From Basidiobolus meristosporus CBS 931.73 (taxonomy: Eukaryota > Fungi > Basidiobolomycota): DNA of 64,000 bases. How positions within the stretch are numbered: the first letter of the stretch is position 1; every line of letters begins with the position of its first letter. The notes under the pieces were generated by a model that worked only from the letters and a program-made list of their open reading frames with translations, was not told where the DNA came from and did no database searches. This document shows positions 29,001 through 60,905 of this stretch, one piece after another. Made by a program: the position numbers and the translations under genes. Location: contig MCFE01000506.1 in assembly GCA_002104905.1 (NCBI GenBank), positions 1 through 64,000 on the forward strand, written 5' to 3'.

Positions 29001-31022
29001 TCAGATTATGCAATTGGTGGAGTGCTGAGCCAAGAACACAAGGGAAAGGACTACCCTGTTGCCTTTGAATCCAAGAAACTGAACTCAGCAGAACAAAACT
29101 ATCCAGTCCATGCAAAGGAGATGCTTGCTATAATACACTGTTTGAAGACATGGAGATGCTATATTGAAGGAGTCAAATGCACTGTGAAGACTGATCATGC
29201 CTCCCTCAAGTATATATTTACTCAGAAGGTACTCTCTAGAAGAATGACAAGATGGAGTGAATACATTCAGCAATTTGACCTGGAGATTGTCTACTGTCCT
29301 GGAAAAAACAACACGGTAGCTGATGCATTATCAAGATTAGATCAAGTTGCACAACTCAACTTGGTGCATGAATCAGATTGGCCTAGCCTATTACCAAAGT
29401 ACTTGGAGGACCAAGCCATTCCTAATGAGGTGGATGAAGATATCAAGAAGATAATCCGTAATGAAGCCAGCAAATTTGTTGTACAGAATGAAACACTCTA
29501 CCAAATTATTGATGGAAGCCCTATTGCCTATTGTCCTTATGTTGCTTGCCTGGATTTAATACATAAGCTACACAATGGATATGGACATCTTGGGACTGAA
29601 GGAACCTATAGCCTTGTGAAAGCCAGAGCCTGGTGGCCCAGAATGAAACAAGACATTGAGAAGCTAGTAAAAACATGCCCAAACTGCCAAATCAATCAAG
29701 GCCAGCCACAAAGAATTGCCAAACTTTTCCCTTTGGAGCCTGTAAGACCATTTGAGAGATGGGGAATTGACTTTATTGGAAGACTGCCAACTACCAGGAA
29801 ATGCAACCGTTGGATCCTAGTAGCAATTGACCATGCCACTAAATGGCCAGTTGCTAAAGCTGTACCAATAGCCAGTGAACAAGAAGTTGCAAGTTTCATT
29901 TACCATGAGATCCTGATGCAGTTTGGATGCCCTGTGGAGATCTTATCCAATAGAGGTGCAAACTTTATGGCAAAGACATTAGAGGCTTACCTGGAAATGC
30001 AGCAGATCAGACACTTGAAAACCCCGGCATATCACCCCAGAACTAATGGAGTCACTGAGCGGTTTAATGGATTATTTGGAAAAATGCTGACCAAGTATGC
30101 AAATGGAGTTGTCAGTAGATGGGATGAGTATATAGACCAAGCACTCTTTGCATGCAGAGTCAGAGTACACAACACCACCCAGCAATCACCATTTTACTTA
30201 GTTTATGGATGTGAACCAAGGATTCCAGGAGATCTCACACAACCAAAGCTTACAGACACCTTAGAAGATGAACTCAGTCAGCCAAGTAGACACCAGCAAC
30301 TGGAACAAAGACGTCAAGAGGCACAGACCAAAGTATCTCAAAGTGCAGAAAAGATGAAGCAGAGATTTGATAAGACTATAGCACCAGAAGCATTGACAGT
30401 TGGGAACTTTGTATTGCTAAGAAACAACACTTGGAAGAAGTTTGAGCCACAATGGACAGGACCATTCAAGATCATCAGAGAATGTCCATTTGCAACTTAC
30501 CAACTGGTAGACAAACAAGGTAATATCTGGGAAGACTTAGTGCATAGGGACAGACTCAAGCGTGCAAGACTTGCTGATAATACTGAACCATCAAGATATT
30601 GGTAACACAAGAAAAGAGATTCAGGAGAACCCTCTCAGCTTTAGTAGGGGAGAATGTTATGATCTGCCGCTTGAATGTTTAATTTAGATCAGTTTTTAGT
30701 CAAATTAATTAGTATATGTTTAGGTTATCAGTATATCAGTATTATCTATGAAATCAGTAGCATTAGTCAGCAAATGAATCAGCAGATCCTTATCAGACAG
30801 AAATAGATATATTAAGTAGGATCTTATTGGGTGGTGATGATGCAATCAAATGAGTCATCAGCCACAGCCTACATTAGGAAATACAATTAGTCAGCAATTG
30901 ATCTGGCAAAATGTATATAAGGAGCTGCTGGAACCTCAATAAAAATCAGTTCAAGTTTTAGTGAATACAATACTAGCTAAACTCCCTATTCCTCCACAAC
31001 TCTTATACCAAGACTTGTAACA
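26086..31022 (+). mobile_element. Full-length Ty3/Gypsy LTR retrotransposon (family 1), young
   Basis: 368-bp LTRs (26086-26453, 30655-31022) with 5 mismatches counted by eye. TSD ATTG is confirmed by empty paralogous sites. PBS TGGTAGCAGC, PPT AGTAGGGGAGAA. Confidence 0.98.
26512..30605 (+). pseudogene. Gypsy single-frame gag-pol with 1 stop (26629) and 1 frameshift (~27048)
   Basis: MSDNQEW..., [23 protein letters not shown], RNase H TDAS, integrase GIDFIG..YHPRTNG..ERFN. No chromodomain seen. Confidence 0.95.
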
Positions 31023-32558: not shown

Positions 32559-35500
32559 TCTTATGAAAAATTATTGAGATAATCCTGTCAAAAGGCTGTC
32601 ACAAAGTTAAAGTCCTGTAACTAAGAAGTGCTGATCCTGTCAGGGCATTGTACAGAGACTGTTGAAAAATAATTTTACCCCAGATTTCACAAAAAACCTG
32701 GTCAAAATTTTCCATCACAATGATGAATAAGTGGCTTTTGATTGGTTCCCTGACAATTTGCTCACTTTCTGATCCCAGACACTTTATTGCCTTCTATGAT
32801 TGTGTGCACTGATTGGCTATTGCCTCTTTTTGTACTCCTTACTTCCTGACTCAACCATTTCTCTCACTATTCATGTATACAATTTGATATATTTCCATTG
32901 CATCTTCAGTTATACAATAATTGCCAACTGTATTGACCTATACAAGTCCCTATACCCTACACTAACATTAAGCTCAGCCCCACACTCAACAAGTGACTCT
33001 ATTAAAATCCACCACTCAATAACTATTTCTGCTGTAATGCTCTGGTTCCACAACTTTGGTGGTAGCCCAATGGATTTATGCCACTGTTCATTCACTGGTT
33101 CCCACATGTCCTGGTCTTCAGCTGGCACTTCAAGGTCTAGCACCTCATCTGCCAGTCTTTGCAATAAATCCTGGAATATTCCAGTATGTTTTCTTGAGCA
33201 CTGCTCTTGAAGAAGTGCTGCAACCTCTTGGTGTGCCTATTAATGTTCCAAAACTCCACTGATGGCATTGTGATAGTCTTTTGAGCTCTTGACATTGCAG
33301 CCTTGTCTGTCAGTGGGATCTCCACTCTGTCAACAATGGAAGATGTGGAGGCTGTGGTCAACAAATTGCATCTTCCAGCAAATGCATCTACCTTGCTGGA
33401 GTGTAGCTCAACTGGCTGCACTTCCAGCTCTTGTGAAAACAGCTGTTCTCTTATTGGTAATTCTTCTTGAATATGATGGGATTCAGTCTGTTTGTGGCTT
33501 GTGGTGTTAACTGCCAAGAACTGCAGTTTTTTTTTCATGCCTCCCTGTCTCAGGCTTGGTCAAACATTTTCCCTTAGCCTTCTCCTTTATCACTGCCAGG
33601 TCTTTCACTGCTACTTTGTCTGATAGCTTCTTGTAAAGAACCATGTTTTTTCCTGGATAAATTCTGCTCTGATGCATCTGTTTTGGCCTGCTTGTTCCTT
33701 GTTGGCTCTCTTCTAGCAGCCTGATGTTTCTTTTCTACTGGTTTTGAGCCCTCAACTGTAGTTGTGACAGGCTCCTGTAAAGCAGCTGGTTTTTATCATT
33801 GCCAGGTCCTTCACCAATACTTGGACTGGGTGCTTTTTGAGTAGAACTATACTTTTTTCTTCATAAATGTTGTGCTGGTGCATCCGTGTCTACCTGCTAG
33901 TCCCCAATTGGCACTCTTCCAGCTACCTGACATCTCTTTGATGCTTGTCTAGAGCTTTTGGCCTTGCTTATAACAGGCTCTTGAGGAAGCTGCTGATTTT
34001 CATCCATGGCACCCTTGTTCTTCTGCCTTTGATAATTTTGGCTTTTCTTCAGGTACTTTCTTAGCATACCAATGCTGGCCCAAAATCTGTTTGCCCATTT
34101 AAATCCAGGATAATGCTCATGGAACAAGTCAAGTGCATTGTGTTTGGCCTTGAGTTCCTGATGGTCCCAAGGTGTGCCAGCCTTAAGGTGATGGCATGCT
34201 AGACTCCTGATGGCCTTTTGAATATTAGCCCACTCTTCATTATTGCATACAACAGCTTCATGGATCTTCAATGTCTTTTGATTTTACGGCTTTAGTACAC
34301 ACACCACATTGTCTCCCTCCCATGCTGTGATAGGTTTCTCTGTGGGCTTTATCTTTGGGCACTGTTGTTGTGCTTCAACAACTGTACAGTGTTCCTCTGC
34401 TGTTACATTGGGAAATGGCTCAATTCTTGGCTGTGACATTGAGCTACTGGAGTTCCTTCTTTGCAGCAAAGATACTGCTCTCTCTACCTGGGATATTGAT
34501 TGCTCTACATGTATTATCTACTCATCCTGTTTCTGGACTATTTCCTGATTTCTCTGGGACATTGCATCTATCCTAGCAGCCACTGCACCTGATTGCTTCA
34601 TTAATGCTTGAGTATGAGCTGACAACATACTTGCTAATATGGGTGGTGGTGATATTATCATGGCCACTTGCTAGTCTTCAACTGAGGGTACTGTGCTTGC
34701 TACATTCTCATCTGCTTAAGCATAATGGTCTGCTTGTGGCTCTGCAGAGGTTCTCAATTGCCCACTTGACTGAGAGCCTGAGGAGTCTGCATTATTACCT
34801 TCAATGGGCACACTGTCCACAGGGCCTTCTTTGGATGTAGCCTTGCTTGTTGCACTGAAGGCCAAAGCTGTTGTAAAAATTTGTCTTTCCACCTAAATAT
34901 TCATTTTAGTCACTTAGATCATTACCTTCAAACACTAGAGAGTACTGGCCAAATTACTCGTTGGGATTTTCTTAGAATACTTTCACCAAAATACCAGGTA
35001 CCCAGAACATGAAAATTCTCAAAGTTGTCCAAACAGCCCCAAGCTTTCCACACATGTTCTTGGGACCTTCCTCAACCTATTCTATGTGTTTGTAATGCCA
35101 AGACCAGGTAGAAGTATAAATACTACTTTACATTCAATAAATCATTAAGTGAAACCACATAATCTACTTGTTCTCCTAATCACTTCCAATATCTCCAAGA
35201 CTCTTACAACAAAAGCAAGCTGTAATCTAACTGTTCTTCTGTTGCCATCAGTGGTGGGGCTTGATTGAGAACCAGACAATTTTGCTTTATTTTTTGGTGG
35301 CATATATATGGAAGCAAGTCAAACCGAAGGGGAAATAGTGTTACATATACATGTGTATGTGGTGCCACAATTTTATTTATAATGCTTACTATGGCAGGTC
35401 AATATTGAATCTTACATTCACATAGGTGCAATGTCTCAAGTACAAGACTGTCTTCAGTTCACATGAGCATTGACCAAAAAGTGATATAATAGTGTTACGT

Positions 35501-38288
35501 CATTAAAGGTCAAACTGTTGGCCCCATGGACAAGACTACTTTGACTCAATGTTTAAGAGAAGAGAAAATTGAGTATATGGCTATTGCAGCAAGCCTCTCA
35601 GCCATGAAGCACACAGACAGCATAGGAAGTATTACAAGGATCATGGCCAGTGTTTTGCCACCTAAGTCATATTTGACCATTCATTGGTCACTACTGTACC
35701 AACATTATCTTGCCAGCAAGTTGATACTTCTTTATCAGCACCTGGCTGTCTTTGTCACCTTGCGCAAACTGAGTCAGGTGAGTTTGTAACACCATTAGGC
35801 TCACCTCAGCCTTCTGAATATGGCATGCAGAGTGATAGCTCTGACAAAGAAGGTTCACTGATGGATTTGTGCCTATCCCCCCTAACAACAGTACTATGTA
35901 TGAGCCCGGTCAAATCATCATATGCAATGAGACAACACCTGTTGAAACAAATGCCAAGGATACTTTAGGGAGCCAAGTGAGCCCAGTAATCTATCTACTA
36001 GTCATTGATGTAATGTTGTGGCTAGAGAAGTGGCATGTTTCCACTAATATCAGTAATGGGGGCTCTGAGGATTTTTTACTACTTCTTGCCAAAATCATAC
36101 CAGGATGCAACTTACCATGTACATGGTATAAGTGTACAACCGTCATGTGGCTGGCAACATCAGATCCAGTGACTGTCCTGATTCCAGCATGTGTTAACAG
36201 TTGCATGGCATTCACATCCAAAAATGCTACCATTGCAACATGTCCAAATTGTCAGGAATCCACCACCATTGAGGGAAAAGATTGTTTTCACTCCAGATAC
36301 ATCCCGTCATACCCCATCTGAGGAAGCTGATGCAGTCCAACAAATATTGCAAAGCTATACAGTACCACACTCAGTAACAATCAAGCGCAAACATATCCAA
36401 TATATTTGATGGCAAGCATTACAAGCAGCTAAGAAGCAAGGGCTACTTTGAAGGTATATATGACCATGCCTTTGCTTTAGCACTTGATGGATTCTTGTTA
36501 AACAAGTACTCTACCAGCAAATGCTGCTGGCCACTGATTCTCATCAATCTGAATCTACCACCCATCTTACAGTATCAGAGCAATAATCTGATGGTAGTCC
36601 CAATGGTATCTGGGCCTAAACCATCACCCAGCCTGGATAGCTGCCTGTATCCATTGCTGGATGAATTTTGTATGCTTTCCAGCATGATAACAGTAAGTGG
36701 CCATCATGTAAAAGCACATATTATTATCTACATTGGAGATACCCCAGCCATCAGCAAGATAGCAGGTTTCCCAGGCACAATGGATGGTATTGCTGTTAAA
36801 TGTGTGAGATTCAAGGAATTTACTCCATAACTCACACACATTATTATTACCCAAACACTAGCACTAAGAACTTCATTTCTCCACAGAGAGAACATACAGA
36901 AGTCAGCATGCAATTGCAGCAAAGTTGGCAAGCTAAACACCATTGGCCAGAATATGGAATCAATTGGAAACTGGAGATATTTAAGATACAGGGTAACTGT
37001 TGGAGCAAAAGCTTTCCACTGGGACAAATGCATTTGCTTTTCAACAGTATCCCTATACTGATGACCAAGTTGTACATGGTGTACTTCCAGCTAAATGAGC
37101 CCTTTGAGATACTGGAGAAATTTGAAAGAATTGGCAAGATATTACAAAGTATCCCCTACCCTAAGTACTTCTCATGGGCTTCAATCAATAATCATATGCA
37201 TTTGCAACAATACAAATGCAAAGACTGGATGAACTGAATATGTATTTATTCAAGTGGTGTTCTCAAGCCATTCCTGCCAAGAGTACATTGGAAGCATTGG
37301 GAGTCATATTTGGACATTATAGGAGCATTTATCCAAAAGCAGACCACCAATGCCAACTTGACAAATCTACAGCTGTTGTGTGAGGAGTTGGTAAAGGGAT
37401 ATGAGCAGATATACTGCAAACATAAAGCTGAATGTGTAGATCTCTGCCACTACTGGATCTATAATCTACTCTATCTTGGACAGTGTGTGGAGAATATTGG
37501 GCCTTGCTTCACCTTTTGATAGTTTCCTATAGAGTGGATGTGTGGGGAGGTAGGAAGACAAGTCAAGTTGCAGATACAACCATATACCAATCTCATCAAG
37601 AATATTACCTTCAAGTCCCTCATGGATGTGATGGGTTGGAACATGGAGGATGGCCACAAAGGGTTGGAAAATACTGAGGACATATGTGCACATGTAGACA
37701 CCTATGCCTATGGCATTAAGAAGCCAAGCAGCCCCAATGCATGGGTAATCAGTTAAGTTATGCAAAGTTGGGTTGAGTGCAACAAGCAGCTAATTTTTAT
37801 TAGGAAGACTCTGCCAAGATATGCTGGATTTCTTATGGTCACAAGCCAACTTCTACACCATTCAATACAGAATTCACACAAACAAGCAGAAAATGGAAAC
37901 ACCATTTGATAAATTGGTACGGTAGCACTATACAGAACCAGCTGTAGGCTGTCATACTGCCAATATAATGCCATCAGTATCTTGCTGTGAGGCTGTCAAA
38001 ATACCGTCATGTTTCTTGCCATATAAGGAAATTTGACATCCTGGCCAACTGGATACACTTAAAATAGTTGTAGTGCGCTAAAAGACCGCAACAATATCAT
38101 GCAAATATTGTCAAGTTGTATCCCTTTATTTGGTTGTAAAATTAGCAAAACATTGTCATGATCCTGTCAAAAGACTGTCAGGAGGGTCACTAATTCCTAA
38201 CTGCTGGTATTGTGATGGTCACTTAGCAAGATCCTGATTGCTGATCTGGATTGGATCCACCCACAGGACCAAATTATTCTTCATAGGG
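32559..38288. mobile_element. Full-length family A CACTA/EnSpm-type transposon
   Basis: Degenerate left TIR TCTTATGAAAAAT, right TIR TTCTTCATAGGG, TSD TAT/TAT. ORF1 (-) 35303 to ~32910; transposase (+) from 35526. Confidence 0.92.
34869..35211 (+). repeat. Solo LTR, Copia family C
   Basis: TGTTG...CAACA, 343 bp, TSD AAAGC. Confidence 0.92.
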
Positions 38289-38407: not shown

Positions 38408-39140
38408 AGACTTGTTCTGTTGGATAGTGCCACATTGAGCCATGAGTGCCAAATAGTGCCATAGTGTGCCTGAGAGTCATAGTAGACCTAAACTTGGCCA
38501 CAGAGTGTGGCATAGAGTTCTGCATATTCATGCAAAGCAGCCCCTGTGTTTCACCTACAGTGCAGGAGAAAATCAATTTTTTAACCTTTTTTTTGGATCA
38601 AAATTGTGCATGACATAAAAGAGCACTGACAGACTGAAGATATGCATCTGGTACACAATACCCATGGCACTCTAAATCTAGCCCCACAGGCTTGTAGCAT
38701 GTCACAAAAATGCATGGCACTATCTTGGTCCACTGGTACTATCTGGCACTATAAGTGCTTTGTATAGGTTCTACTTTAGGGCTAATATTTAAATATAGTG
38801 CCAGATAGTACCAGTGGACCAAGATAGTGCCATGCATTTTTGTGACATGCTACAAGCCTGTGGGGCTAGATTTAGAGTGCCATGGGTATTGTGTACCAGA
38901 TGCATAACTTCAGTCTGTCTGTGCTCTTTTATGTCATGCACAATTTTGATCCCAAAAAAAAGGTTAAAAAATTGATTTTCTCCTACACCGTAGGTGAAAT
39001 ACAGGGGCTGCTTTGCATGAATATGCAGAACTCTATGCCACACTCTGTGGCCAAGTTTAGGTCTGCTATGACTCTCAGGCACACTATGGCACTATTTGGC
39101 ACTCATGGCTCAATGTGGCACCATCCAACGGAACAAGTCT
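38408..39140. mobile_element. 733-bp palindromic (fold-back) non-autonomous element
   Basis: ~345-bp inverted arms (9 mismatches counted), ~42-bp spacer, ends AGACTTGTTC/GAACAAGTCT, TSD ATT/ATT. Confidence 0.96.
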
Positions 39141-39143
39141 ATT

Positions 39144-41020
39144 CTGCTTTGAGAGCATCATAATGTTAGCAGCTTGGAATTATTCACCCTCTTCATAATT
39201 GTATGGCAGGATTGTGAAGGTGTTTGTCTGTTTTTGCTGCCATAAAAGTAGAAATTTGACAATGTTTTAATAGTCTTTTAGCAGGACTGGCAAGGCTTTT
39301 GAAGGACGCAGTGTGGTCTACATTTATTTAAGCAGAACTAACTAGCCAATACATATAATTGCCTTACATGGAAGAGCTTAAGCATGTTTTGACCTGCTTG
39401 TTGCAGACCTTAATTGGAATTATCATGGAGTAGTGTGGCCAAAAGCTAGTCTTGTACAATACTACAACACCAATTTACCATATGGTGATTCTTCTTTGTA
39501 CCTCTCTATGTACCTTTGTTATATCCTACTTTTGTATCACCCTTCCTCATTTGCTTACCCATTACTACCACAGGGCACCCACTGCAATCAACACCAATCT
39601 GTCACCCCATCTTTACAGCTTTTCAGTGCAACACCTGCAACATTACCATACACTTGTATTACCTATGATATATACATTATGTAGGAGTATTCATGGTAGC
39701 TACCACTTTACCATGAATACCTCCTAAATATCTGCAGAGCACTTTTGGTACTTGTTATATATGTTCCTTCTCCCTGCTAATTCTAGTCACTCACATATGT
39801 GTACTGTGGTTCTTGCTGGTACAAATTCTGTATTTAAAGGTACAAAGATTAGCTTGTATCCTACAGAAGGTTGAAATACATTGGTAAAGAAGTATATTTG
39901 AGCTTCAGATAGGCTTATATCTGAAACACTAAACCTACAAAAATGTAAGCTCTAAGAATAATTTACTATAGTATGTTTCCTTGGTGTAATAACTCAATAA
40001 GAAATATTTATGATGATCATGTCAAAAGTCCATCACAAAGCTAAAGTCCCATGACTAGGAGGTAGTGATCCCACCAGGACACCATGTAAAGGCTATTGAC
40101 AAATAATTGTACCCCAGATTTTGTAAGAAACTTGGTCAAAGTTTTTCATTACAACTGTACATAAGTTGCTTGTGATTGGTCCTCTGCTAGTCCTCTCACT
40201 TTCTGATCCTGTACATTCAATCACCTCCTATGCTTATATACTTAGATTTGCTATTGCCTCTTTTTTGCATTCCTTACTTCACAACTCAACCAATTCTCTT
40301 ACATTTTATGCATACATATTGATTTATTTCCACTGAAACATCAGCTCTACTTCATTTGCCAATTATGTTGACCTATACAAGTCCCTATGCCCAACACTAA
40401 ACTTAAGCCCAACCCCACATCCAACAAGTATTTCCATCAAAATTCACCATTCAATAAGTATTTCTGCTGTAATGCTCTTTTTCAATGATTTTGGCTAGAG
40501 CCCTGTGACCTTATGCCACTATCAATTCACTGGTTCCCACATATCCTGGCCTTCAGCCAGCACTGCAAGGGCTAGCACTGCATCTGCCAGTCATTGTAAT
40601 AAATTCTTGCAATATTCAAGTGCATTTTCTTAAGCACTGCTCTTGAGGAAGTGCTGCAACCTCCTGGTGTGCCTATTAGTGTTCCAAGATCTCACTGTAG
40701 GCACTGTAATAGTCTTTTGAGTTTGTAATGTTGTTGCTTCTTTAGTCAGTGGGATCTCCACTCTGTCAACAGTGAAGGATGTGGAAGCAGTGGTAGACAT
40801 ATTGCTACTCTCTGCAAACCCCTTTACCTCACTGGAGTGTAACTCAACTAGCTATGCTTTCAACTCTTGAGAAAACAGCTTTTGTCTTGTTGGCAATTCT
40901 TCTTGGCTATGATGGGATTCACCCTATTTGGGGCTGAAGGCGTTAATTGGTGAGAGCTGCAGCTTTTTCTCAGGCTTCCCTGTCTCTGGCTTGAGTAGGC
41001 CTTTTTCTTTATACATTTAC
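39144..41020 (-). mobile_element. Family A fragments (right-end region 39144-39830; left end plus ORF1 C-terminus ~39993-41020)
   Basis: Homology to 53450-54200 and to 47750-48760. Confidence 0.75.
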
Positions 41021-42419
41021 CCCTTTGAAAACTAATAAGGTCCTGCAGGTGAATTCTATCCAGATCAGCCATCAAGATCCCATCTGGGGACCATTATAAT
41101 GCCAGTAGCTTGGAATTGATGGCCATCTACACAATCTTAAGATGGGATCACAGCAGCATTTGGCAAATTTTGCTGCCAAATAAAGTTAAAAAACATAATG
41201 GTGCTTGAACAGTGTTTTGCCAAGGGTGGCATGGCATTGTGCTGGACTTGTTGCACTCTATAATGCTCAGAGTGGATTGAACTGGCTAGTACATCCAATT
41301 GCCTTATATGGCAAAAAAGCTTGTCAGTGTTTTGATGGCCTCATTGCAAGTCTCAGATTTCATTAGCATGGCAGTATGGTGCCCTACAGCTAGTTCTGTA
41401 TAATGCTACCATTAAAATTTACTAAATGATATTTTCTTTTTCTACCTGCCCTTGCGCAACCCATATATTCCACTCTAGAATCCCCCCTCCTTATTTGCTT
41501 ACCCACTACTATCTTGAGTATTCCACATATAATTTGAATCTAAAAACACTATGGTCTCCTACTTACCAGCCTCTACAATCATGCAAGCCTACCAAAATTG
41601 GCATATTTCTATCACATCAACTTTACAGCTTTTCAGTGTGATACTTGCAAAGTTGCCACATACCTTGTATTGCTGATGACATAGAAGCCTAGCAAACATA
41701 TGCATTATTGTCACCACTTTTACAATGAATAACACCTGAATATCTGCAAAGAACTTTTTGGTACTTAGCCAATAGACTTGGTCCACTGTACCATGTCAGG
41801 GTGTGCAGCACAATCCACAGTTGCAAAGAACAATCAGGTGCAGTTATGTGGCTACCTGAAGGCAGGATTGCTCTTGGACAATTTTGCTCTATGGAGGATA
41901 ATCTTGCACACTATGGCACAATCTGACACAACAAGGCTGGCACAAAAAATTGTGCCAACCTGTAATGTTTGCATCATGTGCACAATTGGATACAATCATT
42001 GTGGTAGGCAAAATCCAGTACTTGGATATGTTTCTTTATGTAAATGGAAATAGATATGTATCACACTATAAACTACACTGATACTTACCATTTTAGCTAC
42101 CATCACTACAATTGGGCAGTATGTCAATGGCTCATTGGTTCAAAAGTATCCTGAAGCTCTTAGCTCCAATTGGCTCATTGACCAATACAGAGATACCTGA
42201 TTTGCCATCTGATATCCCATTTTGCTCATTGAGCCAGTAAATCCCTGATCTCAGTGATTGGACAAGCTGTCATAGCAAGCACACAACCAATTGTGTTGGT
42301 GCAAATCAGATCAAATAGCTGCACTGGTGTTACAGATGATGTATATATATGCAGGGTGCTTATTATAGGGGCTCTGTCACAAATGTGAGATGACCTTAAT
42401 ATTGTGTATAACAAAAATT

Positions 42420-43811
42420 TAGTGAACACTGATTTGCAATGGCTCAATTAGGATTGCAATAAAAATGTGTTATTTGGTTCATGACAAGTATTAACAATTC
42501 AATGCAATTGCATCATCTTCTCCTAGGTTTTTTTCTGATAGGGAATACAACTGAAGCGTTTGGTTGTGATATATTTTGCACACCTGAACTAGTTTCTTGT
42601 TGACTATAATCTTGGCTACTTGTGTACTTGTAGTCAGTATTTTGCCTTGTAGTTGATGAGTGCAATGCTGGAGCTTGGCTGTGCTAAATTGCTTCAGACA
42701 AAATGATGGAATCAGCCTGCAATGCCACTTGCTAACATGTTCTTTTACTTGCCAAAGGCTCTGGTTGTGGAGGCACTTCATGTGGGTCATCATCAGTCAT
42801 TTCACCAGAAGTGACTTGCAGATGGTCAGGTGTGCCGGTATGTGCAGGTGCAACTTGATGCATTGGCATAGCCCTTGGCTGAGTTCAATGTGATGTTACA
42901 TGTTGATGAAACTTGGCCTGCTCCAATGGACTTGTGTCTAAATGGGCAGTTTGGTGGGTTCTGTTAGTCTTACTCTGAAGCGCACATGTTGATCTTATGC
43001 GCATTGACTCAATGCAGGACAAAGTTGTGAGGGGTGTTGGCATAGATTTGACTGACATGTGCCAGTGCACCAACATTGCAGGGGATGGTAAGGAATCCAG
43101 TGTGGCATGCTGGCACAATCAAGAAGCAGTTGCTTGCAGTCTGTATTCTTCCTCTTGAAGTTCACCTCCTAATACTTCAAGGTACTCACTTACACTCTGC
43201 CTGATACATCAGAACTGTTGCCTTGATGAGTCCTGTGTGTATTGCTCTTGGAAGCCACTTCACTCTACTAATATATCACATAGTACATTAGTCATTTGAG
43301 GCAAAAACTCATTCAAAATAGACTTGTTCCATCATTCTAGCTGATCATAGTGCCCAATAGTGCCATAGAGTGCCAGATGGTGTCATACAGTGCCAATTTG
43401 GGATCAAAACTGACATTCATATGACCGTAAAATATCAAATTAATAACAAAGTATACAGCACTTTCTGGCACTATGATCAATGGCACAATGGAACAAGCCT
43501 AATCCCTTTGGTTCCCAAAACTGAGGCACAAACAAATACATCCAGCCCATACTGTGCAAATTGAACGCAGAATTGTTTGTGCACAGCTTCCTCATCAAGT
43601 CCCCTCACTCTCAGCTCATTCTTGACTTAATACTTGTCTTGTTGTATATCTTTTTACATACATCCACTGGCATCTTGATGTAGAACTCATGCCAGAGCTT
43701 TCTACTCAGATTCTTTCATTTCTGCCAACTCTCTGTGGTATCCAGCTCTACTAGATTAATGAGTAGTGACCATATATTGGTATGAAGGCTCATCATAGAC
43801 ACTTGGACCAT
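42420..43811 (-). pseudogene. Family B ORF2 (copy 2), boundaries approximate
   Basis: Homolog of 1132-2670; interrupted by the 181-bp MITE. Confidence 0.55.
43320..43500. mobile_element. 181-bp MITE with family B-type TIRs
   Basis: AGACTTGTTCCA...TGGAACAAGCCT, TSD AAT/AAT; absent from copy 1 (~1440). Confidence 0.92.
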
Positions 43812-44295
43812 ACTAAAATCATTTGGCAAGAACTTAAATGGATCTGTCAGTACCTTTCTGGTCCAGACTGTGCTTGTGAGCTGGGGGATGGGTTTTGTCT
43901 GGGATGTACTAAGTATGAGTTGAGACTTGGTATAGGGACCATATAGATGGATCTAGATTCTAATACAGAAATATATTGGCATCAACCTGGTCTTGTATGA
44001 AATTTATATGAAAACTAATATGATTGTTGAATTTTCCATACATTATGCATAGTGCATGTTGGATTGCATTGACATGGATCAGATCACATCATTGCAGATT
44101 TCTTATTTGATTATAGACTTGTGAGTATATTATCAATAAAGCCACCAAGTCATTGTTTTAGGATGATTTTTGCAACATAATGTTGGGATTCATGTCAATT
44201 CATGAAGATTTAATCACAATACATGGAAATAGATAAATTAAGCTGATTGCACCAAACCAGTTTTAACACCTCTACTCAATCATGGACCAAATTTT

Positions 44296-45051
44296 ATGAC
44301 TTACTCATCTGAATGGTCTTTTCTCATCAGTCCCTTCACTACAGCTGGATATCCTTTTGATACATTAGAAGAGATATATACCAAGTATTATGAACCATCT
44401 AGCCCAATCTGATCAAGGAGATCCCCTGTTAAGCTTCTCTGCTATTAAAAGAGCTATTGCCCTACATGTATTCAATCAACCATTGATGGCAACAGAAATA
44501 CTGGAGGTTTTCATTCTCAGCTGACAGCAATGAAAATCACCTTGCAGAGGGCATCAATGACCTGGAGCAAGCCTGGAATACTAGGCTCAGAAGCACCAAT
44601 GGACTTCCATATCTCACAGTGTTCAGCCACAGGTTCCCTATCAGGAGTGTTTAGGATACCTTCCCAGTCAGGATTAACAGGCCTTCTAGAGGGCAGAGTC
44701 ACTTTTATTCTGGCAAATTCAAGGCACACTGCATGAAGTTTCAAGTACTGTAACATCATCTGGTTTAGTGGGTGATTTGTTGGAAGTAGGCATGGCAATG
44801 CACTGTAGGTAGAGAATCATCCAGGATTCAGTAGAGGGGAGAAGTGTAGGGCAGATTTAGCTTATATGGGAGAGGATTGTCTGAGATTAGGATGCATTAC
44901 AGCTCATAGGAAGCTAAGGAATGGAGTGCTTAGCAGGAAGCAGAAGCTCTACAATGAGATATTTAATCATCTCAGAGTGAGAGTAGAGCATACATCTGCA
45001 TATGTAAAGAGATTCAGCATACTAGCAGGTAAATACAGAGGAAAGTTATGA
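44296..45051 (+). pseudogene. DDE_Tnp_4 (ISL2-like) transposase of family B copy 2, ~250 codons, disrupted
   Basis: ..DTFP..RP..FYSGKFKAHCMKFQ..GSRH..ADLAYMG..YNEIFNHLRVRVEH..KRFSILAGKYRG. Confidence 0.85.
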
Positions 45052-47335
45052 ACTGGAGAAAACAGCAGAATAGGTAAAATAGTCAGAATGCTTATTGACG
45101 CACAGTATATTCATAAAAGAAGACATCCACCAAGAGAAATGTGTCTGAATCTTTATGAAGAGTAAATAAAGCACAAAAAGCACTGTTCTGAGTAACATAA
45201 GTAAGATTGATTAGAGTTACCAGTGACTGTATCTTACCACTGGCATAATGGTAGGCATAAGAGTGCTATATCAATCTGGCACTATAAACAGGCTAGCACT
45301 ATGTGGCACTATCCAGCCAAACAAGTCAAATATATTCCTTCTCCCTGCTGGATTATAGTCCCCCTTATTGGAGCACTCCAGCTCTTGTTTGTGTGAATTC
45401 TGTCTTGAATGGTATAGAAATTGGCTTGCAATCAAGAGAAATCTGGCATACCTTGTAGGGTTTTCTAATAAAATTTTTGTTGCTTGTTGCACCCAACCTA
45501 ACATTGCTTTACTTAACCAACTACCCAGGCATTGGGACTGCTTAAATTCATTATTCCATAGGCATAGGTGTCTCCATGTGCACATCTGTCCTCAGAATTT
45601 TCCAGCTCTTGATGGCTGTACTGCATTTGCCAACTGATCACATCCATGATTGGCTTGAAGGTAATATTCTTAATGAGATTAGGATATGGTAGTACTTGCA
45701 ACTTGACTTACCTTCCTGTCTCCCCACATTTCTGCTCTATAGGAAACTCCCTAAAGGTGAAGCAAGGCTACTATTCTCAACACATCAAGCAAGATGGAAT
45801 AGCAGAAGGATACAGTTGCTGCAGAGATCTACATGTTCAGCTTTATATTTGTAGTACAGCTGGTAAATTCTGTCACAAACTCCTTGCGCAAAAACTATAC
45901 AGGTGTCAAGTTGGCATTGGTGACCCGCTTCTGGATAAATATTCCTATAACATTGACATATGACTCCAAATGCTTCTAATATACTCTTGAAAGAAATAGC
46001 TTCAGAAGGCTACTTGTATAAATACATATCTAGTTCATCCAGTCCTTGCACTTGAATTATTGCATATGTGTACAATTGTTGATTGGAGCCTGTGAGAAGT
46101 ACTAAGGGTAGCAGATACCCTACAATATCTTGCAGTTCTTTCCAATTTCTCCAATATCTCCTAGGTCACATTTAGCTTCAAATGCTCCATGTACAACTTG
46201 GTCATCTGTATGTGGATTTTGCTTAGAAGCAAATGAATTGCTCCCGGTGGAAAGCATTTGCTCCAACAGATACCCTCTATCTTAAGCAACTCTGAATTCC
46301 ATTAATTACATATTCTGGTTGATGGCTATAGCTTGCCGACTTTGTTGCAACTACAGATTATCTTCTGTATATTCTCTGAGCAGGAAGACAATGTCCTAGT
46401 GTTAATGTTGGCCAATAATAATGTGGGTGTTTTATGGAGTAAGTCCCCTGGATCTCACTGATGGAGATCCCACTGACAGACAAGTCTACAACATCAAGAA
46501 CTCAAAAGACTATCACAATGCCTTTGGTGGAATTTTGGAATATCAATAGGCACACCAAGGGGTTGCATCACTTCTTCAAGAGCAGTGCTCAAGAATACAC
46601 ACTTGAAATTGCAAGGACCTGTTGCAATGACTGGAAGATGAGATGCTAGACCTTGCAGTGATGGCTGAAGACCAGGATGTGTGGGAACCAGTGCATGAGC
46701 AGTGGCATAAAGCTCTTGGGTTCCCACCAAAGTCATGGAATCAGAGTATTACAGCAGAAATACTTTCTGAGTGGTGGATTTTAATGGAGGTACTTGCTGA
46801 GTGTGGTGTTGGGCTTAATGTCAGTGTAGGGTACAGGGACTTGTATAGGTCAATATAATTAGCTATTGAGGTATAACTGAAGTTTTAACAGAAATAAACA
46901 ACTTGCTTGCATGAAAAATAAGAGAATTGGTTGGGTCAGGTAGTAAGGAGTGTGAAAAAGAGGCAATAACCAATCAATGCACACAAATGTAGGAGGTGAA
47001 AGAGTGTCTGGGATCAGAACGCAAGAAAATTGGCAGAGAACTAATTAAAAGCCACTTTTGTATTGTTGTGATGAAAAATTTTGACCAAGTTTTTTATGAT
47101 ATCTTGGGTGCAATTATTTTTTGACACTCTTTGCATAGTGTCCTGGTGGAATCATTACCTCTTAGTAATGGGAATTGGAATCTGTGACAGCCTTTTGAAG
47201 GGATCATCACAATAATTTTTCATAGACAAAGTATTTCTCACAGGCTCCAAGCAATATTGATATCTATATGCAACAATACAAACACAAGGATTGGATGGAC
47301 TGGATGAATATTTATTCAAGTGGCCTTCTGAAGCA

Positions 47336-47747
47336 ATTTCTTAGTAGCAACTGAGTTCTGTTTGATTGGATACCTTCAGCTCCTTAGACAGGCAGGCTTT
47401 AGTCTCCTCCAATATTTCTAAGTTATTGGCAGCAATAATAAGTTCATCCATGTGGAGAGCTAATAGACCTGAATCTGTTCTATCTAGCTTATTGTATATA
47501 CTATAGTCTACAGTACTCCCTTAGGAACCCAAAGATTCCATATATGAATCCATCTTGCCATTCTAGGCATTTGGTGATTGTTTGAGTCTATTTAGGGACT
47601 TTTTAAGCTTACAGACATAATGGGAGCTATCCTGGTCAAAAAACCCATCAGGCTGGTCCATGTACCCATCCCAGCAAGTTTCCCTGTCAAAGATGCAATC
47701 TTTACATCCATTTGATGACTGAAAAGCCTATATTTACCTGTAATATA
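47336..47747 (-). pseudogene. Copia RT fragment, probably the continuation of the family C element at 54265-57013
   Basis: HQMDVK..YMDQPDGF..VCKLKKSL. It continues the RT motif order broken at 54265 (..IRLILAI) by the family A insertion. Confidence 0.8.
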
Positions 47748-48076
47748 CCCTATGATAAACTATTGAGATGATCCCATCAAAAGGCCATCACAAAGTTAGA
47801 GTCTTGTGATTAAGAGGTACTGATCTTGTCAGGACACTGTCCAGAGACCATTGAAAAATAATTGTACCCCAGATTTCACAAAAAACTTAGTCAAAATTTT
47901 TCATCATGACAATGTAAAATGGCTTTTGATTGGTTCCCAGCCAATTTGCTCACTTTCTGATCTCAGACACTCTCTTGCCTCCTATGTTTGTGTGAATTGA
48001 CTGGCTATTGCCGCTTTGTACACTCCTTACTTCCTGACTCAACTGTTTCTCTTACTTTTCATGTGTACAATTTGAT

Positions 48077-50878
48077 TTATTTCTGTTGAAACTTCAGTTG
48101 TACCTCAACTGTCAATTGTATTGACCTACACAAGTTGCTACACCCTACACTAACATTAAGCCCAACCCCACACTCAACAAGTAACTCCATTAATATCCAC
48201 CACTCAATAAGTATCTCTACTGTAATGCTCTGGTTCCATGACTTTGGCAGAAACCCAATGGCTTTATGCCACTTTTCATTCACTGGTTCCCACATGACCT
48301 GGTCTTCAGCTGGCACTTCAAGGTCTAGCACCTCATTTGCCAGTCTTTGCAATAAATCCTTGCAATATTCCAGTGTGTTTTCTTGAGCACTGCTCTTGAA
48401 GGAGTACTGCAACCTCTTTGTGTGCCTATTAATGTTCCAAAACTCCACTGAAGGCATTGTGATAGTCTTTTGAGCTCCTGAAGTTGTAGTCTTGTATGTC
48501 AGTGGGATCTCCACTCTGTCAACAATGGAGGCTGTGGAGGCTGTGGTAGACAAATTGCCTTTTTCAGCAAACTCATCTATCTTGCTGGAGTGTATCTCAA
48601 CTGGCTGTGCTTCCAACTCATGTGAAAACAGCTGTTTTCTGGTTGGTATTCTTCTTGGTTATGATGGATTCAGTCTGTTCCTGGCTTGCGGTGTTAATTG
48701 GCAAGAACTGCAGTTTTTTTGCGTGCCTCTCTGTCTCAGGCTTGGGTAGACATTTTTCCCTTCACCTTTACCTTTATCACTGCCAGGGCTTTCACTGCTA
48801 CTTTGTCTGAGTACTTCTTGTAAAGAACTATGTTTTCTCCTGGATAATTTCTGCTCTGACATATCTGTTTTGGCCTGCTTCTCCATTGCTGTCACTCTTC
48901 TGGCAACATGACATTTCTTTTCAGCTTGTTTTGAGCTCCCAACTGTAGTTGTGACGGTCTCCTGCAAAGCGGCTGGCTTTTATCACAGCCAGGTCCTTCA
49001 CAGCTACTTTGACTGGGTGCTTCTTGAGTTGTACTACGCTTGTTCCTTGATAAATGTTGAGCTGGTGCATCCATGTCTGCCTGCTTGTCCCTAATTGGCA
49101 CTCTTCCAGCTGCCTGACATCTCTTTGACACTTGTCTGGAGCTTTCAGCCCTGCTTGTAATGTGCTCTTGAAAAAGCCGCTGGCTTTTAGCCATGGCACC
49201 CTTGTTCTTCTGCCTTTGATAGTTTCTGCTATTCTTAAGATACTTTCTTAGCATACCAATGCTGGCCCAAAATCTGCTTGCCTATTTGAATCCAGGATAT
49301 TAGACTTGTTCCATTGGATAGTGCCACATTGAGCCATGAGTGCCAAATGATGCCATAGTGTGCCAGAGAGGCCAAGTGAGCCTCTACCTGGCCACAGAGT
49401 GTGAAACATAGCTCTGCATCTTCATTCAAAGCAGCCCCTGTGTTTCACCCATTGTGTTGGAGAAATTCCATTTTTTGACCTTTTTTTTGGATCAATGTTG
49501 TGCAGGATGTGTTAGAGCACAAGCAGATTGAAGATATGCATCTGGTGCTCAATACCCATGGCACTCTGAATCTAGCTCCTGTAGCTTGTATCATGTCACA
49601 AAAATGAATGGCACTATCTTGGTCCACTGGTACTATCTGGCACTATATTTAAATATTAGCCCTAAAGTAAGATCTATACAAAGCACTTAAAGTGCCAGAT
49701 AGTACCAGTGGACCAAGATAGTGCCATTCATTTTTGTGACATGATACAAGCTACAGGAGCTAGAATCAGAGTGCCATGGGTATTGAGTACTAGATGCATA
49801 TCTTCAGTTCTCCTGTGCTCTTACACATCCTGAGCTACATTGATCCACAAAAAAAGGTCAAAAAATGGATTTTCTCCTGCGCAATGGGTGAAACACAGGG
49901 GCTGCTTTACATGAAGATGCAGAGCTATGTTTCACACTCTGTGGCCAGGTATAGGCTCACTTGACCTCTCTGGCACACTATGGCATCATTTGGCACTCAT
50001 TGCTCAATGTGGCACTATCCAACAGAACAAGTCTAATGCTCATGGAACAAGTCAAGTGCATTCTGCTTGGCCTTGAGTTCCTGATGGTCCCATGGTATGC
50101 CAGCCTTAAGGTGATGGTGTGCTAGACTTCTGATGGCCTCTTGTATATTAGCCCACTCTTCATTATTGCACTCAATGGCTTCATGGATTTTCAATGTCTT
50201 TTGATTTTTAGGCTTTGGTATAAACACCACATTGTCTCTCTCCCATGCTGTGATGGGTTTTTCTGTGGGCTTTATCTTTGGGCACTGTTGTTTTGCTTCA
50301 AAGACTGTATGGTGTTCCTCTGCTGTTACATTGGGAAATGGCTCAACTCTTGGCTGTGACATTGAGCTACTTGAGTTCCTTCTTTGCAGCAAAGATACTG
50401 CTTTCTCCACCTGGGATATTGACTGCTCTACACATTTTATCTGCTCATCCTGTTTCTGGACTATTTCCTGATTTCCCTGGGCCATTGCATCTATCCTATC
50501 AGCCACTGCACTTAATTGTTTCATTAATGCTTTGGTACAAGCTGACAACATACTTGCTAATATGGGTGGTGGTGATGTTATCATGGTCACTTGCTGATCT
50601 TCAACTGAGGGTACTGCGTTTGCTACATTCTCATCTGCTTGCGCATAATGGTCAGCTTGTGGCTCCACAGAGATTCTCAATTGCCTACTTGACTGAGGGC
50701 CTGGGGAGTCTGCATTATTACCTTCAATGGGCACACTGTCCACAGGGCCTTTTTTGCATGTAGCCCTGCTTATTGCACTGAATGTCAAAGCAAGCTGTTG
50801 TCCAACTGTTCTTCTGTTGCCATCAGCAGTGAGATTTGGTTGAGAACCAGACAGCTTTGCTTTATTTTTTGGCGGCAT
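48077..50878 (-). pseudogene. Family A ORF1 (TnpA-position accessory protein, unknown function), split by the palindrome
   Basis: MPPKNKAK...EWANIQEAIRSL..PWDHQE..ALDLFHEH|YPGFK.A.RFWASIGMLRKYLKNSRNY...FWNINRH..KSWNQSIT..EWW; repeated in several copies. Confidence 0.8.
49302..50034. mobile_element. 733-bp palindromic element, second complete copy (spacer in opposite orientation)
   Basis: Same ends and length; flanks ATT/AAT at a host site reading GGATAATGC in other family A copies. Confidence 0.96.
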
Positions 50879-51099
50879 ATATATGGAAGTGAGTCAAACC
50901 AAAGGGGAAATAGTGTTACATATACATGTGTATGTGGTGCAACAACTTTATTTATAATGCTTACTATGGCAGGTCATCATTGAATCTTACCTTCATGTAG
51001 GTGCAATGTCTCAAGTACAAGACTGTCTTAAGTTCACATGAGTATTGACCAAAAGTGATATAATAGTGTTACATTGCTGAAGGTCAAACTGTTTGCCCC

Positions 51100-53786
51100 A
51101 TGGACAAGACTACTTTGACTCAATGCTGTAAGAGAAGAGAAAAAAGACCATGTGGCTATTGTGGCAAGCCTCTCAGCCATGATGCATGTAGACAGTATAG
51201 GAAGTATTACAAGGATCATGGCCAGTGTTTTGCTACCCAAGTTATATTTGACCATTCATTGGCTACTACTGTACTAATATTATCTGGCTGGTCAGTTGAT
51301 ACTTCTATATCAGCACCTGGCTGTCTTTGTCACCTTGCACAAACTAAGTCAGGTGAGTTTATGACACCTTTAGGCTCACCTCAGCCTTCTGAATTCAGCA
51401 CACAGAGTGATAGCTCTGACAAAGAAGGTTCACTGATGGATTTGTGCCTATCTCCCCTAACAACAGTACCACATATGAGGCTGGTCAAATCCCTATATGC
51501 AATGTGACAACACCCATTGAAACAAATGCCAAGGATACTTTATGGAGCCAAGTGAGCCCAGTAATCCATCTACTGGTGAATAATGTAATGTTGTGGCTAG
51601 AGAAGTGGCACATTTCCACTAATATCAGTGATGGGGGCTTTGTGGATTTATTACTACTTCTTGCCAAAATCATTCCAGGATGTAACTTACCATGTACAAG
51701 GTACAAGTGGACAACCATCATGCAGCTGGCAACATATGATCCAGAGATTGTCCTGATTCCAGCATGTGTCAACAGTTGCGTGGCATTCACATCCAAAAAT
51801 GCTACCATTGCAATGTGTCCAAATTGTCAGGAATCCACCACCATTGAGGGAAAAGATTGTTCTCACTCCAGATATATTCCAGTCATACCCCATCTGAGGA
51901 AGCTGGTGCAGTCCAACAAATATTGCAAAGCTGTACAGTACCACACTCAGTATCGATCAAGCACAAACATATCCAATATATTTGATGGCAAACATTGCAA
52001 ACAGCTAAGAAGTAAGGGCTACTTTGAAGGTATGTATGACCATGCCTTTGCTTTAGCACTTAATGGATTCTCAATAAACAAGTACTCTACCAGCAAATCC
52101 TGCTGGCCACTGATTCTCATCAATCTGAATCTGTTACCCATCTTACAGTATCAGAGCAATAATCTGATGGTAGTCCCACTGGTATCTGGGCCTAAACCAT
52201 CACCCAACCTGGATAGCTACCTGTATCCATTACTGGATGAATTTTGTATGCTTTCCAGCATGTAACAGTAAGTGGCTGTCATGTAAGAGCACATATTATT
52301 ATCTGCATTGGAGATGCCCCAGCCATCAGTAAGATAGCAGGTTCTCCCAGGCACAATGGACGGTATTGCTGTTAAATGTATGAGATCCAGGGTATTTACT
52401 CCATAACTCACACACACTATTATTACCCAAATACTAGCACTAAGAACATCATTTTTCCACAGAGAGAATGTACAGAAGTAAGCATGCAATTACAGCAAAG
52501 TTGGCAAGCTATAAGTCATCAGCCAGAATATGGAATCAATTGGAAACCAGATACTTAAGATAGAGGGTATCCATTGGGGTAAAAGCTTTCCACTGGGAGC
52601 AATGCATTTGCTTTTCAACAATATCCCTATACAGACAACCAGTTGTACATGGTGCATTTCAAGCTAAATGAGCCCTTTGAGATACTGGAGAAACTTGAAA
52701 GAATTGGCAAGATATTACAGAGTATCCACTACCCTAAGTACTTCTCACAGGCTCCAATTAATATTCATATGCATATGCATCAATACAAAAGCAAAGACTG
52801 GATGAGCTGGATATGTATTTATTCAAGTGGTGTTCTGAAGCCATTCCTACTAAGAGTACATTAGAAGCATTGGGAGTCATATGTGGACATTGTAGGAATA
52901 TTTATCCAGAAGCAGATCACCAATGCCAACTTGATGCATCTACAGCTGTTGTGTGAGGAGTTTGTGACAGGATTTGAGTGGCTATACTACAAACATAAAG
53001 CTGAATGTGTAGATCTCTGCCACTACTGGATCTATACTCTACTCCATCTTGCACTGTGTGTGGAGAACATCAGGCCTTGCTTGACCTTTTGGAAGTTTCC
53101 TATAGAGAGGATGTGTGTGGAGATAGGAAGACAAGTCAGGTCACAGGTACTACCATATCCCAATCTCATCAAGAATATTACCTTCAAGTCCATCATTGAT
53201 GTGTTGAGTTGGCACATGGAGGACAGCCAGAAAGAGTTGGAAAATACTGAGGACAAATGTGCACATGGAGACACCTATACCCATGGCATTAAGAAGCTAA
53301 GCAGCCCCAATACATGGGTAATTAGTTAAGTAATGAAAAGTTGGGTTGGGTGCAACAAGCAACTAATTTCTATCAGGAAAACTCCACCATGATTTGCCAA
53401 ATTTCTCATGGTCACAAGCCAACTTCTACACCATTCAATAGGGAATTCACACAAACAAAAGCCAGAGTGCACCTATAAGGGGGACTAGAATCCAGCAAGG
53501 AGAAGGAATATATTGGATAAATACCAAGAAGTTCATTGCAGATATTCAGGAGGTGTTCATGGCAGAAGTGGCAACAACCAAGCATACATTTGCAAGATGT
53601 ATATGTTACCAGCAGTACAAGGTATATTGCAACTTTTCAAGTATCACACTAAAAAGCCAAAAAGTTGAGGTGATAGAAGTATGTCAATTGTGGCAGGTGT
53701 GTGCGTTTGTAGAGGTTAGTAAGCAGGTGGCCATAGTTTTTTTTGATTCAAACTATATTTGGAATACCCAAGGTAGTAGTGGGTAA
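51100..53786 (+). pseudogene. CACTA/EnSpm (Transposase_21 / DUF4218-like) transposase, disrupted
   Basis: N-terminal CGYC..LS; CVNSCVAF..CPNC; YIP; IFDG; ALAL(D/N)GF; CWPLILINLNL.P; GPKP..LDSYLYPL.DE; IGD.PA..K..G..GH.G; MH.LF.NI; LLHL..C.EN..P...FW.FP.ERMC.E. Confidence 0.9.
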
Positions 53787-55746
53787 GCAAACAAAGAAAG
53801 GTGATTCTACAGTGGAATATATGAATTGCACAAGGGGAGGTAGAAAAAGGAAATACCATTTGGTAAATTGGTATGGTAGCATTATACAGAACCAGCAGTA
53901 GGCCGTCATACTGCCAATATAATGACATCAGAGTCTTGCTGTGAGGCCATTGAAATACTGTCAGGTTTCTTGCCATATAAGGCAATTGGATGTCCTGGCT
54001 GACTGGATCCACTTAAAATAGTTATAGAGTGCTGAAAGACAGCAACAATACCATGCAAATATTGTCACAGCACCAATAAAATATTGTCAAGTTTTATCAC
54101 TTTATTTGGCTGTAAAGTTAGCAAAACACTGTCATGATCTCATCATAAGATTGTTAAGAGGGTCACTAATTCCAAGCTGCTGTTATTATGACAGTCTCTA
54201 AACAGGATCTTAATGGCTGATCCAGACCGGATCTACCTGTGGGACCAAATTATTTTTCATAGGGTTAATAGCCAATATTAGTCTGATGAAATTAAACTTG
54301 ACTACCAGTACAAAGGTCTTGGTATAGTCAAGTCCTCTTGTTTGAGAGTATCCTTTGGCCACAAGTCTTGCTTTGTATCCTTCAAATGAACCATAAGCCA
54401 TGTATTTCTTCTTGAAGACCCATCTGCATTCAGTTGATTTTAGGTAGATTGGTAACTTGACAAAGCCCCAAGTTTGATTTTCCATCAGGGCATGATACTC
54501 CTCAGTTGTTGCAGATCTCCAAAACTTTGTCTAAGAGCTATTTGGGCCTCTTTTACAGTATGTGATTCATCTATATATACTGAATAGGCATAGTCTAACT
54601 TTGTACACTCATTGATATGGTAATTTGGACTACTTCTGGTGTAGTTGGATCTCCTGGTTTGAGATACTAGAATGATCACCTCTGGGATATTCCTGGCCAC
54701 TGATTTGGGCTGAACCATGGTTTCAGAGTCCCCTGGAGTGAAAAAATTCTCATTGTTTTGCTCTGATTCAATCATGACAATGGGTGGACTTGTGATGAGA
54801 TTTTTTATCAGCATTAGATGTCATTTTTTGTGTAAATTTCAAATTTTTATCAAACAACACATCCCTGGACTTGATCAGCTTCTTTTTTTGGTATTGTAGA
54901 GTCTTTATGTCTTACTTTCATTGCAGTGACCCAAAAATATGCATATTACACTTTTTGGCATTTACTTTGATTGATATCTGAGCCGTTTCTTGGTATATAC
55001 AGTGCACCCAAGTATTCTTAGATGCACTGTACTTGGTTGCATCCATACCATGCCTCAAATGGAGTAGAATCACAAAGTATTCTGTGATTACTTCTATTTT
55101 TAAGGCACACAGCTGCATCAACTGATTCTGTCCAAAAATCATAGCACTATTTTTGATCACAGATCATAGACCCTGCCATATCAGTTATTGATCTGTTTGC
55201 ATATTCTGCTACTCCATTTTGCTGTGGAGTGTGTGGTACAGTAGCCTCTTGCTTATCCTATAAACCTTGCAGAGGCAAATGAAGAGTTTTGCGGTATATT
55301 CTCCACTATTGTCAGAGTTTGCTTTCTTGATTTTTTCACCAATTCCTCTCTCTGCCATGGCTTGAAGCTCCCTGAGCTTAGACAGAGCTTCTTCCTTTCT
55401 TTCCATGGAGTAGACCCATGTGTATCTTGTATAATCATCAAAGAAAGTGATTGAATACTTCATCCCACTAATAGCTATTCAGGATGGCAACTATCACATC
55501 TTCATTAGTAGTTGGTATGCCTGCAGATCCTGTCTCATCCACCAGCAGGGAAATTCTGCTAATTGAATTTTCTTTTTTTTCTCCTGGCAGCATCTCTGTA
55601 GTTAAGAATTTTTGTATGATACATTTTCTTAGCTGATGAACATGACTGATATGTGTCTTCTAATGCCTTCCAAGCATACATTGCTGCTTTTACTCTAGAG
55701 CATGGAATTAGCAATTGGTCTTTGACATTAAAGCAAATGCATTTAA

Positions 55747-58610: not shown

Positions 58611-60905
<2,295 letters not shown>

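Follow-up and report, generated by a model that had tools for sequence, protein, structure and literature searches.

The stretch of DNA analysed in the current work (64,000 nucleotides, hereafter referred to as the window) corresponds to positions 1-64,000 of the forward strand of contig MCFE01000506.1 from the fungus Basidiobolus meristosporus CBS 931.73 (assembly GCA_002104905.1), and contains, at positions 41774-45328, a decayed DNA transposon with two gene remnants: a DDE transposase pseudogene (44296-45165, + strand) and a second pseudogene, designated open reading frame 2 (ORF2; 42513-43692, - strand). An initial annotation, made from the sequence alone, had described this locus as a complete two-gene element and as the candidate driver of a set of miniature inverted-repeat transposable elements (MITEs) sharing its ends. 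The element measures 3,555 bp in total and 3,371 bp after subtraction of a 181-bp MITE nested within ORF2, as had been estimated (≈3.37 kb).

Boundaries, ends and target site

Both flanks of the element are part of another repeat family, and in an uninterrupted paralogue of this family at about 53.5 kb the left and right flanking sequences meet at a single AAT (53512-53514, reverse strand). Because this paralogue holds one AAT where the occupied locus has two (41771-41773 and 45329-45331), the limits of the element can be set at 41774-45328 with a 3-bp target site duplication (TSD), and the span of 41771-45331 with an AAT duplication proposed in the initial annotation is exact. No alternative boundary of the element yields a TWA duplication.

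The left terminal inverted repeat (TIR), AGACTTGGTCCA, occupies positions 41774-41785 (+ strand), and 11 nt of it also terminate the element of a metagenome contig (L013, see below). The right TIR, TGACTTGTTTGG (45317-45328, - strand), is degenerate: of its 12 positions, 7 agree with the left end and 9 with the MITE ends, and it begins with TG, whereas the left end and every MITE end begin with AGACTTG. The AGACTTG-type TIRs previously attributed to the element are retained for its left end, with the right end being a diverged version. When one mismatch at most was allowed, the 12-mer end motif was found eight times in the window against an expectation of 0.75. Immediately internal to the right end, a motif map located two subterminal TAGTGCCA-type repeats (45277-45311, - strand), and it is in the MITEs and near this end that the motif clusters.

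At 1-3316 (- strand), truncated by the start of the window, lies another decayed copy of the element; it is 75-88% identical to the 41774-45328 copy along its length (≈80% overall) and is flanked by AAT at 3316-3318. The same end type bounds four non-autonomous inserts, as had been recognised beforehand. The MITE nested in ORF2 (43320-43500) is flanked by AAT duplications at 43317-43319 and 43501-43503; it is absent from the copy at 1-3316, which acts as an empty site, and the two copies become colinear once its 181 bp and one AAT are deleted. Two fold-back MITEs of 733 bp are located at 38408-39140, with an ATT/ATT duplication, and at 49302-50034, with ATT/AAT flanks and an empty paralogue carrying AAT at 34112-34114, while a truncated fold-back copy (3997-4594) is followed by ATT after its intact end.

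All six insertions with the AGACTTG end type in the window (both copies of the element, the two complete 733-bp MITEs, the truncated one and the 181-bp MITE) are thus flanked by AAT or ATT, and since these triplets are mutually reverse-complementary, the target is A-W-T. The 3-bp duplication and the boundaries are proven through three paralogous empty sites. A solo end-like 12-mer, TGACTTGTTCCA, also occurs at 34120-34131 and 50043-50054, in two copies of a repeat bearing a Tnp2-type gene and at a distance of 8 bp from the point of MITE insertion; an older insertion may have left it behind, or it may be due to chance.

The two genes and their decay

The transposase pseudogene was delimited by tblastn using P0001, an intact relative of 294 aa, and would encompass approximately 294 codons if intact. 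P0001 was the top match of an exhaustive HMMER search in which the longest intact transposase piece (147 aa, taken from the copy at 1-3316) served as query, to which it is 57% identical (57-60% overall); this search retrieved 57 proteins at E ≤1e-3 among 1.84 billion representatives. A word-index protein search with the 147-aa piece gave zero matches, the same search with P0001 yielded two further relatives and nothing more, and a PDB sequence search with P0001 returned chance matches only. The transposase pieces encoded in the window match Pfam DDE_Tnp_4 (PF13359) with E values of 2e-5, 8e-6 and 2e-3, the corresponding value for P0001 being 8.6e-23 and those for P0001 and its relatives being approximately 1e-20. 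The catalytic residues of P0001 are D122, D173 and E237, and this D, D, E series is conserved in the alignment of the relatives (alignment A1). The YSGK..H..K.Q signature, for which the gene had been noted as a compact transposase, is encoded at 44694-44741.

The alignment of P0001 to the 41774-45328 copy extends from the ATG at 44296 to position 45165, and that to the copy at 1-3316 proceeds in one frame with three stops. This colinearity makes the transposase a compact protein of about 294 aa, and neither introns nor an N-terminal extension are indicated. ORFs upstream of 44296 were considered as additional transposase exons and ruled out, as the P0001 alignment begins at the ATG at that position. 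All gene calls were made without any spliced gene model.

ORF2 was defined by its reading frames and comprises approximately 330 codons once the MITE is subtracted. It is divergent from the transposase gene, with starts at 43692 (-) and 44296 (+) lying 603 bp apart, so that the arrangement, formerly described as back-to-back, is a head-to-head one; the 603-bp spacer inferred from these gene starts (43693-44295) is presumed to represent a shared promoter region. The C-terminus of ORF2 is a low-complexity tail ending in the basic sequence RKKPRRR. No match to ORF2 was obtained in Pfam, in NCBIfam, in a word-index search with a 194-aa piece or in a protein atlas; Pfam likewise detected no Myb/SANT domain in it, although a remotely homologous one may be present. 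A single-sequence AlphaFold2 model, in which the first 120 aa are predicted to be helical and the tail disordered, is unreliable (predicted local distance difference test score, pLDDT, of 40).

Between the two element copies, substitutions are slightly under-represented at codon positions 1 and 2 of the transposase and at position 2 of ORF2, a bias which weakly supports the former status of both ORFs as genes. Considering this bias, and the presence of both ends and both genes, the 41774-45328 copy, or the copy pair, might be supposed to still work by means of read-through, splicing or RNA editing. Such residual function is extremely improbable in view of the lesions: the transposase contains six premature stops (44410, 44446, 44652, 44773, 44806 and 45049), two frameshifting deletions (1 bp near 44532 and 14 bp near 44750) and a change of the second catalytic Asp to Gly (44794-44796), while ORF2 has six in-frame stops and an N-terminal frameshift in addition to the inserted MITE. 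Moreover, P0001 is colinear with the transposase pseudogene without introns, and the differences between the copies, being dominated by transitions and CA/TG pairs, are typical of neutral CpG decay. The 41774-45328 copy is dead and non-autonomous, both of its genes being pseudogenes. It may be called complete in terms of structure, with both ends and both genes present, but not in terms of intact genes, and because these are broken it cannot drive anything, which removes it from consideration as the driver of the MITEs.

The copy at 1-3316 is also broken, since its transposase frame is interrupted by the three stops mentioned above and its ORF2 holds a foreign insert of 320 bp (2181-2500); the transposase frame is open over a longer stretch than in the 41774-45328 copy. 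The 320-bp insert is absent from the latter copy and has unrelated ends (CCCTAAGAG at its beginning and CATAGGG at its close), and probably represents a further non-autonomous element of small size. Transitions account for most differences between the two copies, the commonest dinucleotide difference being CA versus TG (48 columns), a pattern that reads as the signature of an ancestral CG which has decayed differently in each copy. The CpG observed/expected ratio of the window is 0.19 at a G+C content of approximately 40%, and this depletion, together with the CA/TG differences, suggests that transposons of this genome have undergone strong CpG decay driven by methylation.

Relatives of the transposase and mobilisation of the MITEs

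The alignment of transposase relatives was used to scan metagenome contigs, which yielded 22 loci, and viral contigs, which yielded none. One of these loci (L013) is an element of 3,358 bp with AGACTTGGTCC bounding both ends, and AGACTTG ends were found in the expected place and orientation on the left side of two loci (L004 and L007) and on the right side of five others (L005, L010, L016, L018 and L022), mostly 130-340 bp past the transposase gene. No ends could be defined for L001, nor a right end for L004, and none of the contigs retrieved seemed to be human. The nine flanking triplets recovered from these relatives are ATT, GTT, ATT, ACT, ATT, ATT, ACC, CAT and AAT, six of which fit ANT. 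A divergent ORF is located upstream of the transposase in L001, L004, L009 and L013, and none of these four ORFs contains a Pfam domain.

The terminal 7-11 nt are kept in relatives whose transposases have 35-45% identity, whereas the subterminal repeats, which are of the ATCGAT type and unlike TAGTGCCA, and ORF2 differ completely. In a profile-profile comparison (hhalign), ORF2 and the ORFs in the equivalent position of the relatives reached a probability of 0.2, which indicates no detectable homology. By their shared ends, mostly ANT flanks and divergent ORFs on unrelated contigs, these relatives connect the MITEs of the window with this clade of transposases.

Several features of these relatives were noted in addition. 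In the G+C-rich loci L013 (2539-2908 and 3248-3348), L007, L009 and L018, short blocks filled with the ATCGAT-type repeats that also underlie the element ends interrupt the transposase frame and may be introns or nested small elements. Among the relatives found as proteins, P0019 has a C-terminal extension with a Pfam chromodomain, and P0021, P0022 and P0023 have C-terminal tails which are Tudor-like by eye, with no Pfam match; these extensions suggest chromatin-targeted integration in sister lineages.

With regard to the origin of the MITEs, these share with the element 12-bp ends and, in the case of the 733-bp MITE, the terminal ≈31 bp of the right end at 87% identity. The MITEs did not arise from the element by deletion. 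Because the ends, the subterminal motif and the target are common to both, it is most likely that intact members of the element's family moved the MITEs in trans.

An alternative mobiliser is a CACTA-like Tnp2 (Transposase_21) transposase encoded next to the element; the element would in this case be a bystander whose ends are similar. The repeat family into which the element and one MITE are inserted does carry a Tnp2-type ORF (51444-52262), and CACTA elements likewise generate 3-bp duplications. Nevertheless, here as on L013, the AGACTTG ends enclose a DDE_Tnp_4 gene and ORF2 only, and they lie 130-340 bp downstream of the DDE_Tnp_4 gene on five further unrelated contigs. In addition, the ends are not CACTA-like, and a sequence-specific A-W-T target is typical of the PIF/Harbinger-ISL2EU-Spy (PHIS) superfamily. 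Mobilisation of the MITEs by the Tnp2 transposase is therefore very unlikely, and their movement by intact members of the element's own family is retained.

In the mechanism that we propose, an intact element would encode the DDE transposase of about 294 aa and a second protein, expressed divergently from the central spacer. By analogy with Harbinger elements, the transposase would recognise and cut the conserved AGACTTG ends, and the fast-evolving ORF2 product, a putative DNA-binding protein, would bind the lineage-specific subterminal repeats (TAGTGCCA in the window) and thereby recruit the transposase. In Harbinger3_DR, the transposase has been shown to read the tip and the second protein to read the subterminal repeats. 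These roles are assigned here because the terminal 7-11 nt go with the transposase clade, in contrast to the subterminal repeats and ORF2, which vary in concert. Staggered cuts of 3 nt at A-W-T upon integration would produce the AAT/ATT duplication, and intact family members would mobilise the MITEs in trans. The 41774-45328 copy integrated in a different transposon, received the 181-bp MITE afterwards and has decayed, largely via CpG loss.

Classification and genomic surroundings

Groups within the PHIS superfamily are defined by TSD composition (Han et al. 2015, PMC4482050). In that survey, Pangu elements have an ANT duplication (AWT for several families), ends 11-40 bp long that begin with AG or GG, a mean length of approximately 3,487 bp and two ORFs, the second of which is mostly motif-free; their transposases range from 216 to 537 aa and occupy a tree position adjoining IS5, for relatives of which an ANT target has also been reported (PMC4482050). 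Their hosts include two ascomycetes and three basidiomycetes, these being the only fungal groups listed, and fungi are among the hosts of AWT families (PMC4482050). Pangu corresponds to Harbinger2 of Repbase (Kojima 2025, PMC12730594).

The element described here has a transposase that can be aligned with the DDE_Tnp_4-type catalytic region by which the PHIS superfamily is recognised, and its duplication, ends and two-ORF layout all agree with those of Pangu/Harbinger2. Like Pangu, for which Pangu-1/2_MLP, Pangu_Tsti and Pangu-1_Tmel are fungal examples for comparison, it combines a 3-bp AWT duplication established from empty sites, ends beginning with AG, a length of ≈3.4-3.5 kb and a fungal host with two ORFs, namely a DDE_Tnp_4 transposase that lacks an extra domain and has affinity to IS5, and a domain-less second ORF. 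Its transposase is near the short limit of the range reported for Pangu. With rather high confidence, the element is thus classified within the PHIS superfamily as a Pangu-type (Repbase Harbinger2) element, a decayed class II transposon of the cut-and-paste kind. The ANT-type TSDs named for the Pangu subgroup in the initial annotation are borne out by the published survey (PMC4482050), and in TSD, end type, size and two-ORF architecture the element largely coincides with a described group, an outcome which that annotation had named as speaking against its own reading.

Other PHIS groups resemble the element less. Canonical PIF/Harbinger elements (Harbinger3_DR, PIF, Ping/mPing) belong to the same superfamily and likewise possess a DDE transposase, an accessory protein and MITEs that share ends only, but they have a TWA target and a Myb/SANT partner, in contrast to the AWT target of the present element, in which Pfam finds no helix-turn-helix (HTH) or Myb/SANT domain. 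ISL2EU elements have a related DDE transposase and an AT-rich target, yet they differ by a 2-bp AT duplication in A|AT|T, a THAP/HTH transposase and a YqaJ exonuclease partner, and no match to THAP, HTH or YqaJ was obtained for the proteins of the element, in whose transposase Pfam and NCBIfam recognise DDE domains alone. The PIF/Harbinger-ISL2EU grouping originally suggested therefore holds at the level of the PHIS superfamily and not for ISL2EU in the strict sense. Spy elements, which make no duplication, and NuwaI (CWG) and NuwaII (C|TNA|G) are set apart by the AAT/ATT duplications found here, and CACTA/CMC-EnSpm elements by the AGACTTG ends, which enclose a DDE_Tnp_4 gene and not Tnp2. Similarity to bacterial IS5 elements (transpos_IS5_4; ISCysp19- and ISMae4-like) extends to a length of ≈290 aa and to the same motifs around the catalytic residues, whereas the element has a second gene and resides in a CpG-depleted eukaryotic host. 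P0001 and its relatives match NCBIfam transpos_IS5_4 with 55 bits, which is far short of the family cut-off of 140, and in tblastn the relatives are 25-38% identical to IS5-like genes of cyanobacteria and Streptomyces.

A number of points weigh against assignment to Pangu or against the role ascribed to the family. Membership is judged from TSD, ends and architecture; three of the nine flanks of the relatives deviate from ANT (GTT, CAT and ACC); the right end has diverged, with only 7 of 12 positions agreeing with the left end; ORF2 is without a detectable homologue even among the ORFs that take its place in the relatives; and the sequence shared by MITEs and element is limited to ≈12-33 terminal bp, trans-mobilisation being an inference from it.

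Some of the observations would also suit a clade of AGACTTG-ended elements forming a separate, previously unrecognised deep lineage of PHIS, characterised by transposases of ≈290-300 aa, by an invariant AGACTTG sequence at the ends and by a partner ORF that is unrelated, with the ANT target being shared with Pangu by ancestry or convergence and with independent descent from bacterial IS5/ISL2-like elements being possible. The end would have stayed unchanged while the proteins diverged by at least 60%, and complete turnover would have affected the partner gene along with the subterminal repeats. The scarcity of relatives is in keeping with such a lineage, only the 57 proteins among the 1.84 billion representatives matching the N-terminal half of the transposase and the word searches being near-empty, as are the bacterial IS size of the transposase, the 55-bit match to transpos_IS5_4, the 25-38% identity to IS5-like genes and an ORF2 that lacks a Myb domain. 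However, nothing observed departs from Pangu as described (PMC4482050), and a separate lineage is regarded as unlikely. If true, it would offer a natural system in which recognition of the cleavage site by the transposase can be separated from end binding by the partner.

Under the preferred assignment to Pangu, the element would represent a new family of this type, and Pangu would have its first record from an early-diverging fungus, a zoopagomycete. Extension of Pangu-type elements to such a host would represent a refinement, given that huge PIF-Harbinger expansions have already been reported in Basidiobolus (Muszewska 2017, PMC5751038). Repeat annotation of this transposon-rich genome gains from the analysis, which delimits the element exactly and defines the target and the genes of a family by which the abundant MITEs with AGACTTG ends, the 733-bp fold-back type among them, were probably moved. 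Conservation of the terminal 7-11 nt alongside replacement of the subterminal repeats and ORF2 is a point of mild interest.

Other transposons make up much of what was recognised elsewhere in the window. The repeat family carrying the Tnp2/Transposase_21 gene is represented at 45332-54268, 32560-37886, 39985-41773, 9940-12331 and other positions, its copies being 72-91% identical, and it is within such copies that the Pangu-type element and the MITE at 49302 are inserted. Long open frames are present in a Copia-type element (gag, integrase and RVT_2; 21323-25239) and in a Gypsy-type polyprotein (protease, RVT_1, RNase H and integrase; 27048-30605). An Rfam scan of the window identified no family. 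Towards its end (58000-64000) the G+C content climbs from ≈0.40 to 0.48-0.56, and the sole evident host gene is a fragment of a CSE1/CAS exportin gene at 62754-63962 (- strand; Pfam CAS_CSE1, 1.8e-139).

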